DNA from: Lytechinus pictus
Lineage: Eukaryota
Length of the DNA: 64,000 bases
Reading direction: 5' to 3'
NCBI RefSeq assembly: GCF_037042905.1
Contig: NC_087256.1
Coordinates: forward strand, 5,518,001 to 5,582,000
Shown here in pieces: positions 13,802 through 39,651 of the stretch. Numbering within the stretch: the first letter of the stretch is position 1; each line of letters starts with the position of its first letter. The notes below the pieces were generated by a model. It saw only the letters and a list, made by a program, of their open reading frames with translations, did not search any database and was not told the DNA's origin. Both the position numbers and the translations under genes were made by a program.

Positions 13802-16800
13802 TTAGTTGGTGTAGAGGAGAAGGTTTGGTGAAAGCCATCCCCTGTTGCTAACCTTACCGCTGGTGGCGCTGTTGAGGATTGAACTGTAGACAGAAGATGG
13901 TGACATGCTTGGGCTGGCGGCAAGGACAAGAGCAGCAACTCCTGAAAAAAATACCAAAACATAATGGAGATGAGTGGTGTGATCATGTTATGCAATGGAT
14001 ATTCATTGAAAAGAGTACCCAAAGAAAGTAATCTTCAAGAGGCAAATTGTTCAAACAATATAATTTCCAGATAAAATTATCTGGGTTGATGTGAGGTCGA
14101 AATATTAATCATCTTCTGCTCTTTCCCATAATTCAGTTTCTCTTTTTCGGTTATTTTCCTCGTCTCTCAATCATATCAGTGTATGCAATTAAAAGCACTT
14201 CCCAAAACAGAAAAGAAACGGAATATATATGATTGGGCTAGAGTTTTTGTTATTCAATGGCCATGATGACTAATTTGCCGTGGTGCTCTTTCAGAATACT
14301 TTGGTATCTCAGGGTCCCCACACAAAAGCTTCTTCGTCCTTTACATGATAGATTTTTAACGTATTCAGACAGTCGACTTACCTGAGACGTGTGGGCAGGC
14401 CATGGAGGTACCACTGATGGTGCTGATGGCACTGTCAGATCCCTTCCAGGCAGAGGTGATGTCAACTCCAGGGGCGAAGATGTTGAGACAGGAGCCATAG
14501 TTGGAGAAGTAGGCACGGGCATCAGTATCATCGGTGGCACCGACGGTCACGGCCTAGAGTTGAAAACAGTGAGACGTTTACTTGAAAGAAACTTCGTCAT
14601 TCGCACTATTCCGTAATGGTTACGTTGAAGCCAGCATTTATTATAAACTGTCTGGTAGCAATAGATATGCTGGAGATGATCAGTATATAATTCGAATAAT
14701 ATTTGATTTAATATACACTGGTAGCTTACAGGCTAAAGTCCAAAGGGTGACATTTTTTAAATTGACAAAAACAATAATTATGCGAAGCAATTTCTAACCC
14801 TCGATAATAACGAGATGAAACAGCTAGGATATCCTCAAAAAAAGACTGACCGAAAGCATACTAAACATGGAACAAAGAATCCCTTCTTCAATGATCTGTT
14901 AAGTACTTACATATCCAGACCTGGCTGGGGAGGATCCGCAAGCATCCTCGTCACTGTTACCAGCGGCGACGGAGACAGTGAAGCCAGCATCGTACATGCG
15001 CCTGACAGCAGAATCAGTGGTGGTGGAGGCACCACCTCCAAGAGACATGGAGACAACTCCTGGACGACGACCGTTAGAGACAACATAGTCCATTCCTGCA
15101 ATGACAGTAAAAAACATGCCAAAGGTTAAATAAAAAAAAAATATCAGGCATTCGGTCGACTTATAAAATTGGTCAGGCTTATGTGCAACGTTCCCGAGAG
15201 GATATAGCTCAATAACTACATCAATCATGCATTTTTAAATGTTTTAAACAGGTTTCTTTTCAATTAGGTAAAGGCATTGCTCAAACAAAACCTTGCATGA
15301 AGAGACTTGCTCAACAGACTTACGAAACAAATTTTCGTCTTCGGAATATGCCATTTCGGTTAGAATTTATTTTTCAGATTTCAAGTCCATTTCTCGTGGC
15401 GATTCTGACGAATTTATAAAAATAATTCAGTCGACAACCAAATCTGTATTCAGCTTTTGTTTTCATAATGATTGCTGATATCTAGATTGGATATGAAAGG
15501 AGTTTACCCAAACAAGTTTAATGGTTCATTGTAATAATTTCACACCCCAACATGACCTAATCATGACGTAGTAATAGAATTACCGTCGATGACTCCAGAG
15601 TTTGATCCAGATCCAAGACATCCAAGAACACGGATTCCGTAGATGTTGGAACTCTTGGCGACTCCGTAGTCGGTTCCAGCAACGGTTCCTGCGCAGTGGG
15701 TACCGTGACCGTTGCAGTCAACTCCCTATAAGATTGCACGTGGGGAGAACAAAAGTTTTGATACTGTCTGATGTGATCTCATTGACAAACCATATTCCTA
15801 CTTACATAATACTTCCAGAACAGAAATGACGAAAACCCACATGTTATAGGATTCGTTTCGACCACTTTGGCTGATGAGCGATTTCGTCATTGGTGCCATT
15901 TAGGTACTTTGGTATATATTGCCAACCATGTAGCTCTAGTTTAAGAAATTGCAAACCATTCTTTCAGGGGAGCCTGTGAAAAATGCCACAATGGGAAATA
16001 TCGCCTTTAATAATAATATAATAATAATCCGCTTTTATATAGCGCTTAATACATCGGATCGACGTGTCTATGCGCTTTGCAGATATATTATTACCCCGGT
16101 CATCGGATTCAATCAGTCATTACCGCACACAATGTATGCACATCCTCAACTCCCTGGGGAGTATTCCAGTCAGTCGCCAGTGAGGCGCACACAGTACTGG
16201 ACAAGCTACAATGACCTTCACATCCTACCGTGTACCCATGCATTTAGCACCTGGGTCGAGATTGCCAAAGTACAGTGTGGATTAACGCCTTGCCAAAGGA
16301 CGCCAGACCGCGGTGGGATTCGAACTCACGACCCTCTGTTTACAAGGCGAGAGTCAGAACCACTACACCACGGCTCCTCCTCATTTAAATTGCATGATAA
16401 ATGTTCCAAGTGCGTCATGGAAGCTAGGAACAATATTACTGCATCAAGGAAATGAACTTACGTTGTTGTTGCCGATGGCATCGTAAGCAGCGACAGCACG
16501 GCCTCCGAAGTCGTTGTGAGTGGGCCATACACCGGTATCGATCACGTACACATTCACACCAGCACCAGAGTCTGTAAATGAATCGAGGCGATCATTAATT
16601 TTGTCAACTTGACTATCTCTTGAAATTTTGCATCTATGTCTGTCTCACGTATCATTTTCAAAGTATTGCCGCCAATGGAGCATGAATGCAACCCTGGCCT
16701 AATGGTAAGTTTCCTCGTCTCAGTAATGATATTATATATTCGGGGGAAGATCTGTACATTATTTTCTAGATATTTTTATTTAGGGAATTAAAGGATAATG

Positions 16801-18402
16801 ATAACATTTTGAAATTGGGAATAAGGAAGTTTCAAGCTTATCAAATCGTATACATCCTTATATTGATCCGTATGTATGAAAAGTAGTCTTTTATTAGCGT
16901 ACTTGGTTTTCTTAACCCAAACGTCCACTTTACCTCTTCATATCCTAAAATAATGGTCAAATATGAAGCTGATAGTAAAAAAAAATATGATAATAATAAT
17001 AATAAACTAATCGTAATTTTTTGTCTGAATCTTACTCATTGGGTTGAAGGAGCCATCAAGAGGAAGATTCCTCTGGTCAATACGGTCAAGACCCCATGAA
17101 GCGACGGCCTGAGTACGGACAACACCATCCTCCTCAACGTGTACTACTCCATCAAACCTGCGGAGCTGTAACATCATACAAAGATTCGTTTCTTTTTTAA
17201 GGTTTATGAAAGAGTTTTATCAATCATTTGGGTTTTAGAATTGCATTGGGCAGTAATTCTACATGTAGACATCGGTTGTTTCTTGGTATTTGCCTCTTTG
17301 GAGGTCAAAACTTGAGAAGGGACATTATGCGGAACAGACTGAGACTTCCGATACAATAAAACGAAGTACCATCTATTGGAATGACGAGTTTAACTTTTTG
17401 TTAATGGTTCAGATATTTGGCGAAGGGTAATGTATGGACAAGTTAGGCTTACTGGTATTCGATTTCAAAAAGAACAAATCACTGCCAGGTTATTCCTGTT
17501 GGTCAAGAGAAGCAGTGACTCAATAATCAAATTCAAATCGGACTAAAATTGTACCCTTGAAAGGCAATTTTGGCAGCGATGTTGCAAGCCAAGACTGAGC
17601 CATGATAACTTAATTTGGTAAGGGACATCGCATTGTTAATTTTAAAGTTTAAGATAATACTTACGAACTCGACGGCATCCTCGCTGAGCTCAAGGGAAAG
17701 GGTCTGCATGTTCTTGAAAGTCTTGAGGATCTTGGCAAGCCTGAAACGGCGGGTTGAGAAAGCTGAAGAAAGACGGGCACCGAACTCACTCACGTCGACG
17801 TTGTCCTAATATAATATTCGCATACATTAAAAATGAAGTATGTGAAAGTGCACATACATCATTCACAGCTTTGCTATATACAGTCATAATAGGCCTACTT
17901 GTAATGTTGAAATAATGGGGGGATGATACAACAGATCATCCCCATTAATAGATTTGATACTCTAATCTACGCCAATTGAAGGTTCTAACAAAGTTCTTCA
18001 AATTTGGTATACAAGATATTGATGACACGACTGTGGATTCTCATAGGGTGTCATCAAATATAACTTGGATATTTCATTTTAAAATGTAATTAATTAATGA
18101 AGCACTGTATTTTAAGCAAATTTGACTTTGAAATTACATTTTATTTGTAAAATTAGTCATAGAATATTGGAGACGACATATTAAGAGCGTACTATTCTTT
18201 TTTTTAATATTAATGATCTTATGGGATATTTGAAATCTTTAGAAGACATTTAGAAACATCTACAGAAAATATAAGAAGGAAAATGCAAACTTACATCGAT
18301 CATGACAAGGTACTTGTCCTTGATGCTTTCCTTAGCACGCTGAAGAGGAGCGATGCCATAGGCAACAGCCAAAAGGGCGGTAAATACAATCAATCCACGC
18401 AT
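13802..18402 (-). CDS. Subtilase gene A: secreted S8A serine protease (proteinase K/aqualysin/PCSK9 type), 375 aa. Exons 18295-18402, 17665-17805, 17036-17165, 16462-16571, 15584-15725, 14911-15095, 14382-14553, 13802-13941
   Basis: All introns are GT-AG and the spliced ORF is 1128 nt and uninterrupted. Signal peptide [16 protein letters not shown]; I9-type propeptide ending [10 protein letters not shown]; catalytic motifs VIDTG (Asp), HGTHCAG (His), AAGN (oxyanion Asn), GTSMACPHV (Ser); AATAAA at 13721-13726. Confidence 0.95.
16008..16376 (-). mobile_element. tRNA-derived SINE in intron of gene A
   Basis: Minus-strand head GAGCCGTGGTGTAGTGG (A box)...GTTCGAATCC (B box); 3' end AAGCGCTATATAAAAGCGG followed by an (ATT)n tail. 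Absent from the homologous introns of B and C. Confidence 0.85.
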
Positions 18403-38600: not shown

Positions 38601-39651
38601 TCATCGAGGGTTTTAAATTGCTTAGCATGATTATGTTTTTGTCCAATCCAGAATGTGACCCTTTGAAGCTTTTAATATGTAAAAAATAAAACTTTGAAAG
38701 AGCCAGAAATACTACGTTTCGATGCTTTGCCTTTCAAGCTATCAGGGTATCAAATCAAAATTATTCGAATTATAGACTGATCATCTCCAGCATATCTATT
38801 GCTGCCAGACAGTCTATTCTAAATGCAGGATCAAATTAACCAAAACAGTAGGGTGCGAGTGACGATAACGGTCTCGCTGATTTCCACTCTAGGCCCTTAC
38901 CGTTGGTGCCACCGATGACAGTGATGCCCGTGCCTACTTCTCCAACTATGGCTCCTGCTTGAACATCTTCGGACCTGGAGTTGACATCACCTCTGCCTGG
39001 AAGGGATCTGACAGTGCCATCAGCACCATCAGTGGTACCTCAATGGCCTGCCCACACGTCTCAGGTAAATGGACTATTTGTACATGTTTTATAATGATGA
39101 CTTTAATGACGGCCCGAATGACGGCAAAGCTTTTTGCCACAGGTCCTTGTGATACCCAGATATTCTGAAAGGGCACAAATGTGATAAATTATTCACTGAA
39201 TGATGAAATAAGTTGGTTGCTGTTAACACTTTGAGGGAGTCCTCTTAACTGCATACACCGGGAGTTGGAAAAAAATGGACGACAGAGATAGGAGAGGGAG
39301 AGGAAATGGAATATGGGAAGGGGTAAGAGCAGAAGAAGAATATCTCACCCTTACATCAACCAGTGTCTTGTATTTTGGAATAACTTTGTTTGATCAATGT
39401 ACCTTTAATTTCATAGCACAATCTAGAGGTATATCTCTGTTCAATGAATACTTATTGCATAAAATGAGCATGCCACTCATCTTCATATATTTTTGTGTGA
39501 TTTTTTTCCAGGAGTTGCTGCTCTTATCCTTGCCGCCAGCCCAAGCATGTCACCATCTTCCGTCTACAGTTCAATCCTCAACAGCGCCACCAGCGGTAAG
39601 GTTAGCAACAGGGGATGGCTTTCACCAAACCTTCTCCTCTACACCAACTGA
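35683..39651 (+). CDS. Subtilase gene C, 375 aa. Exons 35683-35790, 36316-36456, 37084-37213, 37566-37675, 38028-38169, 38321-38505, 38893-39064, 39512-39651
   Basis: Same exon sizes and phases as A and B; catalytic motifs intact; TGA at 39649-39651; AATAAA at 39741. Confidence 0.95.

Follow-up and report, generated by a model that had tools for sequence, protein, structure and literature searches.

We analysed a window of 64,000 nucleotides (nt) from the genome of the sea urchin Lytechinus pictus (NCBI RefSeq assembly GCF_037042905.1, contig NC_087256.1, positions 5,518,001 to 5,582,000 of the forward strand; coordinates below count from the first base of this window). Six-frame reading and tblastn identified three intact paralogs of an aqualysin-type serine protease gene, of which copy 1 is encoded on the minus strand and the other two on the plus strand (Table 1). 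The exon sizes are the same in all three copies (108/141/130/110/142/185/172/140 nt), every splice site is GT-AG and all reading frames are intact. These genes are members of the ambulacrarian "aqualysin-1-like" family of proteinase-K-like S8A subtilases, and their intron positions support the view that they would be relatives of the gene from which the protease part of PCSK9 descends.

The three encoded proteins are 96-97.6% identical (97.6% between copies 2 and 3), and synonymous divergence between the copies is ~0.09-0.11. The ratio of nonsynonymous to synonymous divergence (dN/dS) was 0.20-0.21 for copy 1 against the other copies and 0.14 for copy 2 against copy 3, indicating purifying selection on all three. 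Copies 2 and 3 lie in the two units of a tandem segmental duplication, and copy 1 is an older inverted copy, in line with the local expansion that had been read from the DNA in an earlier, sequence-based note (hereafter, the original prediction). A putative fourth copy at 8929, proposed from the motif VVRTQ, was rejected as a chance match, and the window holds three copies only.

Exon boundaries of PCSK9 were read from rodent exon-boundary primers, in which intronic bases are printed in lower case (PMC7929951, supplement 5), and residues were mapped through alignments to solved full-length PCSK9 chains (2p4e_P and 9szy_B) using UniProt numbering. All six introns between the late propeptide and the end of the catalytic core were found to equal PCSK9 introns 2-7 in both position and phase. 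The original prediction had named these six sites with their phases, together with a 142-nt exon carrying the catalytic His, and the gene models and RNA sequencing (RNA-seq) joints place them exactly as claimed; the human PCSK9 boundaries that it gave are likewise borne out by the rodent primers. Residues 2-27 of exon 4 correspond to PCSK9 177-202, which puts the split codon of intron 3 on residue 175. For the His exon, residues 3-45 correspond to PCSK9 222-264 (and, also without gaps, to aqualysin 66-108), so that the exon comprises codons 220-266 plus 1 nt and measures 142 nt in both genes. Residues 11-58 of the 185-nt exon align ungapped with PCSK9 282-329, and the exon therefore ends at residue 332. 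The last shared intron falls within the ungapped motif S-x-A-x-x-H-V-[SA]-G, eight residues downstream of the catalytic Ser in each gene. Exon lengths differ between the window genes and PCSK9 by whole codons only (130/124, 110/134, 142/142, 185/197 and 172/184). By our own arithmetic, the chance that six of six introns coincide within ~870 aligned nt positions is ~1e-15, or ~1e-9 if one position in ten could take an intron.

The 12-exon structure of PCSK9 and its internal exon sizes are conserved across mammals (PMC7929951). In the primer table of the same study, the intron between the protease part and the Cys/His-rich domain of PCSK9 (intron 8) is in phase 1; its site lies a few residues beyond the end of the urchin protein, and both its phase and its site fit the addition of a C-terminal domain to an ancestral terminal exon. 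A search of the literature for human PCSK9 boundaries through intronic variants in Human Genome Variation Society (HGVS) nomenclature returned almost nothing beyond c.799+3, and no report of shared PCSK9 introns was found in the literature searched.

Table 1 Features of the window, with the PCSK9 counterparts of exons and introns. Intron positions are RNA-seq read joints in copy 3; a slash marks an exon boundary between codons or residues.
Feature	Position	Strand	Description	Basis or PCSK9 counterpart
Copy 1	18402-13802	minus	8 exons, 375 amino acids (aa)	ungapped exon match to copy 3
Copy 1 exons	18402-18295, 17805-17665, 17165-17036, 16571-16462, 15725-15584, 15095-14911, 14553-14382, 13941-13802	minus		
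Copy 2	21709-25568	plus	8 exons, 375 aa; head-to-head with copy 1	
Copy 2 exons	21709-21816, 22343-22483, 23033-23162, 23497-23606, 23974-24115, 24267-24451, 24839-25010, 25429-25568	plus		
Copy 3	35683-39651	plus	8 exons, 375 aa	translation and RNA-seq joints
Copy 3 exons	35683-35790, 36316-36456, 37084-37213, 37566-37675, 38028-38169, 38321-38505, 38893-39064, 39512-39651	plus		
Copy 3 exon 5 (142-nt His exon)	38028-38169	plus	catalytic His and first Cys pair	PCSK9 exon 5
Copy 3 185-nt exon	38321-38505	plus	oxyanion Asn of AAGN and Cys of DAC	PCSK9 exon 6
Copy 3 172-nt exon	38893-39064	plus	catalytic Ser (GTSMA); phase-1 split Gly codon at end	PCSK9 exon 7
Intron 1	35790>36316	plus	after VMID, phase 0	not common to PCSK9
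Intron 2	36456>37084	plus	DAVEF/L, phase 0	PCSK9 133/134; primer boundary DLLGL/ALKLPHV; propeptide profile, preceding residue on Leu133
Intron 3	37213>37566	plus	NPM-N, phase 1	PCSK9 175; Asp codon split after first base, before GGSxVEV
Intron 4	37675>38028	plus	GNNN/G, phase 0	PCSK9 219/220; primer boundary TRFHRQ/ASKCDSH
Intron 5	38169>38321	plus	ID-G, phase 1	PCSK9 267; primer boundary SGTLI-G-LEFIRK
Intron 6	38505>38893	plus	SGY/A, phase 0	PCSK9 332/333; primer boundary SPASAPE/VITVGA
Intron 7	39064>39512	plus	HVS-G, phase 1	PCSK9 394; primer boundary QAAAHVA-G-I
Tandem segmental duplication	18891-27004 (copy 2) vs 33247-41058 (copy 3)		~90% identity including introns and flanks	window self-comparison
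Non-long-terminal-repeat (non-LTR) retrotransposon reverse transcriptase (RT) open reading frames (ORFs)	27738-29132	plus	between copies 2 and 3, after the first duplication unit; interrupts the duplicated unit and does not belong to the protease genes	RT-like motifs in translation
316-aa ORF	45626-46576	minus	similar to the N-terminal half of UDP-glycosyltransferase	

The age of this gene structure was assessed by exact protein-to-genome mapping of homologs that were fetched together with their DNA. The same seven introns were found in the starfish Patiria (exons 117/141/130/107/142/185/175/140), the sea cucumber Holothuria, the hemichordate Glandiceps (exons 123/150/130/107/142/185/172/137) and two divergent paralog clades (P0244 and P0234). 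The crinoid ortholog of Anneissia japonica (P0177, L002:2001-6004) has lost the last intron (HVS-G), leaving exons 7 and 8 fused into one exon of 321 nt. A Strongylocentrotus purpuratus gene bearing CUB domains (LOC589938; P0194, L007:1001-9705) keeps the 142/185/172-nt exons and has lost intron 3; its exon 8 continues, via a phase-1 intron that lies 25 residues beyond the catalytic domain, into four exons that encode two CUB domains. The seven-intron structure is thus ancestral to Ambulacraria. A proteinase-K-like gene of the chytrid Cladochytrium replicatum (P0003) has many introns, none of which falls at the animal positions, and we therefore regard the structure as shared with vertebrate PCSK9 and not general to eukaryotic proteinase-K genes.

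Two gene models encountered during this mapping were unusual in themselves. The chytrid gene (L004:2001-5712) encodes three proteinase-K-like domains in tandem, with introns that repeat from unit to unit, and two of the three domains have altered motifs (VFDG or IDGG for DTG; GTSY for GTSM). The Ptychodera flava protein P0183, labeled "isoform X1" (L001:2001-14910), gave no exact single-gene mapping, and the model looks chimeric, as its pieces match two tandem copies ~8.6 kb apart.

At the protein level, each of the three copies comprises a hydrophobic N-terminus (signal peptide), an I9-type propeptide and an S8A catalytic domain, and ends directly after PNLLLYTN. An exon-by-exon structure search returned bacterial keratinase (5wsl), aqualysin (4dzt), the Vibrio proteinase VPR (1s2n) and 8c4z as the best solved relatives of every exon, and overall the aqualysin/VPR group ranked above fungal proteinase K, which ranked above PCSK9; PCSK9 was absent from the solved-structure matches for exons 3, 7 and 8 and for the C-terminal profile. 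In ungapped alignments the catalytic Asp (VIDTG), His (NGHGTH) and Ser (GTSMA) correspond to aqualysin Asp39, His70 and Ser222, respectively, and the oxyanion-hole Asn of AAGN is aligned to PCSK9 Asn317. All four residues are present in every copy, with the DTG, HGTH, AAGN and GTSMA motifs intact. Residues 1-56 of the 172-nt exon match aqualysin 173-228, so that Ser50 is aligned with Ser222 and Cys22 with Cys194. Four Cys residues occupy aqualysin positions 67, 99, 163 and 194 (PCSK9 equivalents 223, 255 and 323), from which two aqualysin-type disulfides (Cys67-Cys99 and Cys163-Cys194) are predicted. The Cys pattern, the retention of DTG and GTSMA and the stop after PNLLLYTN without a further domain had all been read correctly by the original prediction.

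A family profile of the N-terminal 130 residues matched the proteinase K proform (E = 1e-15) and the PCSK9 prodomain (1e-10), as well as subtilisin prosegments. In the same profile the Gln of RTQ is aligned to the PCSK9 autocleavage residue Gln152, as had been proposed, while mature aqualysin and VPR begin, in the alignment, 1-2 residues further upstream; this Gln is a candidate for the cleaved residue, and the exact cut is uncertain by ~2 residues. Pfam analysis of full-length relatives (~375 aa) gave S8 and I9 (PF05922) as sole matches. Neither a Cys/His-rich C-terminal domain nor a CUB domain follows the catalytic domain in any of the three copies. The P domain (PF01483) of the kexin-like convertases PCSK1-7 was not found by Pfam among the ambulacrarian relatives, and the window protein ends at the catalytic domain. 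A protein atlas search returned generic S8 clusters only. Besides the aqualysin pairs, two extra Cys residues are conserved in nearly all ambulacrarian members, one located four residues past the catalytic His (HGTHCAG) and the other three residues past the catalytic Ser (GTSMACPH). The former occupies the position of the free Cys73 of proteinase K.

Transcription and splicing were examined on copy 3 using an RNA-seq run of complementary DNA (cDNA), X24. All exons were covered, depth was zero inside every intron, and read joints were recovered for seven of the seven introns (Table 1), some of them shifted by 1-3 bases with a substituted letter, as expected of alleles or paralogs. Read identity to copy 3 was mostly 95-99% and reached at least 99% in a tenth of reads, suggesting that the signal comes partly from sister copies or other individuals. 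Assembler word depths were very large in two older runs, although expression is poorly reflected by depths of this kind. A run depleted of ribosomal RNA (rRNA) under the same species label yielded no reads for the genes in the ~6% of the run that was read, and expression may consequently be specific to a tissue or stage. From 39066 onward, 134 X24 reads were observed to pass from exon 7 into a different last exon, starting GTTGCAGCCCTTATGCTCCAGGC (VAALMLQ...). This alternative exon matches the P0164/P0178 paralog group, which points to co-expression of a sister locus elsewhere in the genome.

Homologs were collected by an exhaustive search with the 185-nt exon (best 150 matches) and by two word-index searches with full-length relatives (best 120). 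The animal relatives among the matches listed are echinoderms and hemichordates only, and the best 150 exon-search matches are all closer relatives than PCSK9. The echinoderm and hemichordate relatives are annotated as "aqualysin-1-like", "proteinase T", "extracellular serine proteinase-like" or "cuticle-degrading serine protease", and as "PCSK9" in two sea-cucumber records; labels of a bacterial or fungal type had been anticipated from the sequence. Copy 3 shares 91.7% identity with S. purpuratus XP_787278.2, 85% with a Diadema protein and ~60% with starfish and sea-cucumber orthologs. Bacterial relatives reach 50-55% identity and include Meiothermus, relatives of Lysobacter, Chloroflexota and many metagenomic sequences. 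A previous study counted 62 proteinase-K-like loci in S. purpuratus and put PCSK9 in the same structural family; introns were not considered (bioRxiv 10.1101/802215).

A quick maximum-likelihood (ML) tree (LG+C20) was built from 77 sequences, PCSK9 not included. The three window copies fall with S. purpuratus and Diadema in an echinoid clade, surrounded by starfish, brittle-star and sea-cucumber branches, and all ambulacrarian sequences fall into one unresolved group, joined by a single long-branched transcript of a marine protist. This group lies among bacterial and metagenomic sequences with values of 89-94 in the Shimodaira-Hasegawa-like approximate likelihood ratio test (SH-aLRT), which is not decisive, and the chytrid sequence lies far off on a long branch. 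A grouping of Ambulacraria with the chytrid was not rejected by the approximately unbiased (AU) test (p = 0.46), and the tree therefore decides nothing on vertical descent versus transfer. The vertical inheritance claimed by the original prediction is accordingly upheld within deuterostomes, by the introns; at greater depth, where the ambulacrarian clade sits among bacterial and metagenomic sequences, the family may have descended vertically or come by ancient transfer from bacteria.

Two sets of matches have uncommon arrangements. The Tara Oceans eukaryotic transcripts P0008 and P0288 encode proteinase-K-like units placed head to tail (WGLDRID... to ...LMYV) and separated by Pro/Thr/Ser-rich linkers, an arrangement that is polyprotein-like. 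Four records labeled "Salmonella sp." (P0129, P0196, P0204 and P0225) combine S8 and CUB domains, and their identity with echinoderm proteins is 50-58%; they are almost certainly contamination by animal transcripts.

Taken together, we consider it likely that the cluster comprises active, apparently highly expressed digestive subtilases of Ambulacraria that share one intron-bearing ancestor with the prodomain and protease part of PCSK9. On the most economical reading, this ancestral gene would already have existed in the deuterostome ancestor, if not earlier. The ambulacrarian line would then have kept and multiplied the active short form, while the chordate line would have lost activity in trans and gained the Cys/His-rich domain, its old terminal exon becoming an internal exon followed by a phase-1 intron. 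The CUB-type genes of urchins, in which the same C-terminal accretion has occurred via a phase-1 intron, provide an independent example of the route proposed for PCSK9. By analogy with established subtilase biology, the propeptide of the window proteins would act as an intramolecular chaperone and be cut off autocatalytically near RTQ/AVASW. The mature enzyme of ~28 kDa, with its Asp-His-Ser triad, oxyanion Asn and two aqualysin-type disulfides, would then be secreted and could cut proteins in trans, as a digestive endopeptidase of broad specificity made by exocrine-type gut cells.

Several points weigh against this reading. In sequence, the window proteins are much closer to bacterial enzymes (~50-55% identity) than to PCSK9, for which E-values are weak, and the tree was computed without PCSK9, so that a grouping of PCSK9 with the ambulacrarian clade is outside its scope. 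Intron 1 is not shared and lies ~14 residues downstream of the PCSK9 site in the profile alignment. The PCSK9 boundaries come from rodent primers alone, and the HVS-G intron was mapped to PCSK9 by its motif. Activity, cleavage site and tissue of these three copies are furthermore inferred.

A more far-reaching version, which we regard as possible but doubtful, holds that PCSK9 is a domesticated digestive enzyme of the gut. An active, secreted aqualysin-type subtilase of gut exocrine cells in the deuterostome ancestor, possibly bacterial before it gained its seven introns, would have been retained and multiplied for digestion in ambulacrarians. In chordates, fusion to a Cys/His-rich domain via a phase-1 intron would have converted it into a non-proteolytic receptor regulator made by gut-derived organs.

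The shared introns could also be a general ancestral trait of animal (or older) proteinase-K-like genes, in which case the urchin genes would simply belong to that family, without being the specific lineage behind PCSK9, and a "proto-PCSK9" label would over-reach. All metazoan proteinase-K-like genes, including PCSK9, have indeed been treated as one patchy family, with reports from amphioxus, sea cucumber and gastropod cited (10.1101/802215), and the gene structures compared here are those of deuterostome animals and one chytrid. Nevertheless, the chytrid gene, as the sole non-animal eukaryote compared, shares none of the positions, and no non-ambulacrarian animal appeared among the best 120 matches of two database searches, so we hold this explanation to be unlikely. 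Were it correct, the window genes would still have inherited their structure in common with PCSK9, and the specificity of that link alone would change.

With regard to function, the aqualysin-1-like gene (PstI/pstl1) has been used, alongside amylase, carboxypeptidase B-like and pancreatic lipase, to mark digestive or exocrine-pancreas-like cells of urchin and sea-star larvae (PMC11817407; bioRxiv 10.64898/2026.09.20.752982). These single-cell papers make a digestive role the best supported one, which was one of the options offered by the original prediction, and by analogy the window copies are probably digestive. Active enzymes serving defence, immunity or tissue remodelling instead of digestion would agree with the 62 loci in S. 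purpuratus, an expansion typical of defence families (10.1101/802215), and with the lack of reads in the portion read of the rRNA-depleted run. However, such a role appears quite unlikely given that the single-cell atlases assign aqualysin-1-like to digestive cells, together with amylase, carboxypeptidase and lipase, and that the proteins are plain, secreted and single-domain, without recognition domains.

It is also conceivable that the ambulacrarian gene came from bacteria, separately from the PCSK9 lineage, and that the six introns were gained in parallel at favoured sites. The position of the ambulacrarian clade among bacterial and metagenomic sequences, with the SH-aLRT values given above, and its ~50-55% identity to bacterial enzymes would suit such a history. 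Against this, chance would be astronomically unlikely to make all six introns match in position and phase, the lengths of the adjacent exons (142/142, 185/197 and 172/184) differ by whole codons only, and the AU result for Ambulacraria plus chytrid does not demand a separate bacterial origin; we consider parallel gain very improbable. Finally, the striking similarity of the protein to aqualysin and VPR might suggest that the assembly here contains contaminating bacterial DNA or a very recent insertion from bacteria, but the chance of this is practically negligible and the spliced reads already refute it. The seven spliceosomal GT-AG introns are removed in poly(A)/cDNA RNA-seq, the region is AT-rich animal sequence with retrotransposons, and intron-bearing orthologs lie on chromosome-scale scaffolds of species from five echinoderm classes and of a hemichordate.

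As a drug target, PCSK9 is of major importance. It is unusual among proteases in having no known substrate other than itself, and little has been documented on where it came from outside the vertebrates. Shared intron positions, as rare-event characters, do not depend on how very unevenly the sequences of this family have diverged, and here they appear to tie the prodomain and protease exons of PCSK9 to a family of short and apparently fully active enzymes that lives on in echinoderms and hemichordates. Shared ancestry with this family would supply the "before" states for three steps: the loss of trans-activity, the retention of the propeptide in the role of a permanent inhibitor and the gain of the C-terminal domain. 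It also calls for caution in annotation, since "aqualysin-1-like", "proteinase T" and the sea-cucumber "PCSK9" denote one animal gene family. As objects the window genes are ordinary, because their family is already known, annotated and counted; what appears to be new, among the literature searched, is the intron link alone.

Among known systems, the S. purpuratus genes of the XP_787278.2 (PstI/pstl1) type resemble the window copies in length (~375 aa), motifs and their seven introns, with no essential difference. The echinoid CUB-bearing proteases share the propeptide and catalytic exons of the window genes and fall within their ambulacrarian clade, but differ by the loss of intron 3 and by their two CUB domains. 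Aqualysin I (4dzt), VPR (1s2n) and the Meiothermus keratinase (5wsl) are collinear with the window proteins and nearly gap-free, matching them at the catalytic residues and both disulfide positions and sharing the mature N-terminal motif WGLDRIDQR. In contrast to the window genes, which have seven introns and end at the catalytic domain, these bacterial genes lack introns, and in many of them a C-terminal pro-segment or further domains are present. Fungal proteinase K (1ic6; proform 8rse) belongs to the same S8A subfamily and has an I9 propeptide, but its catalytic-exon scores are below those of the aqualysin group and its disulfide pattern differs from the aqualysin type. PCSK9 resembles the window proteins in its proteinase-K-type prodomain and catalytic domain, in introns 2-7, in Cys 223/255 and 323 (the last being the partner of Cys358) and in the aligned Asn317. 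It differs in having a Cys/His-rich domain and DTS and GTSQA in place of DTG and GTSMA, and presumably also in the Cys375-Cys378 loop region, which the window proteins lack. PCSK9 acts by binding the low-density lipoprotein (LDL) receptor and not by proteolysis in trans, whereas the intact canonical active-site motifs argue for the window proteins being ordinary proteases rather than receptor binders.

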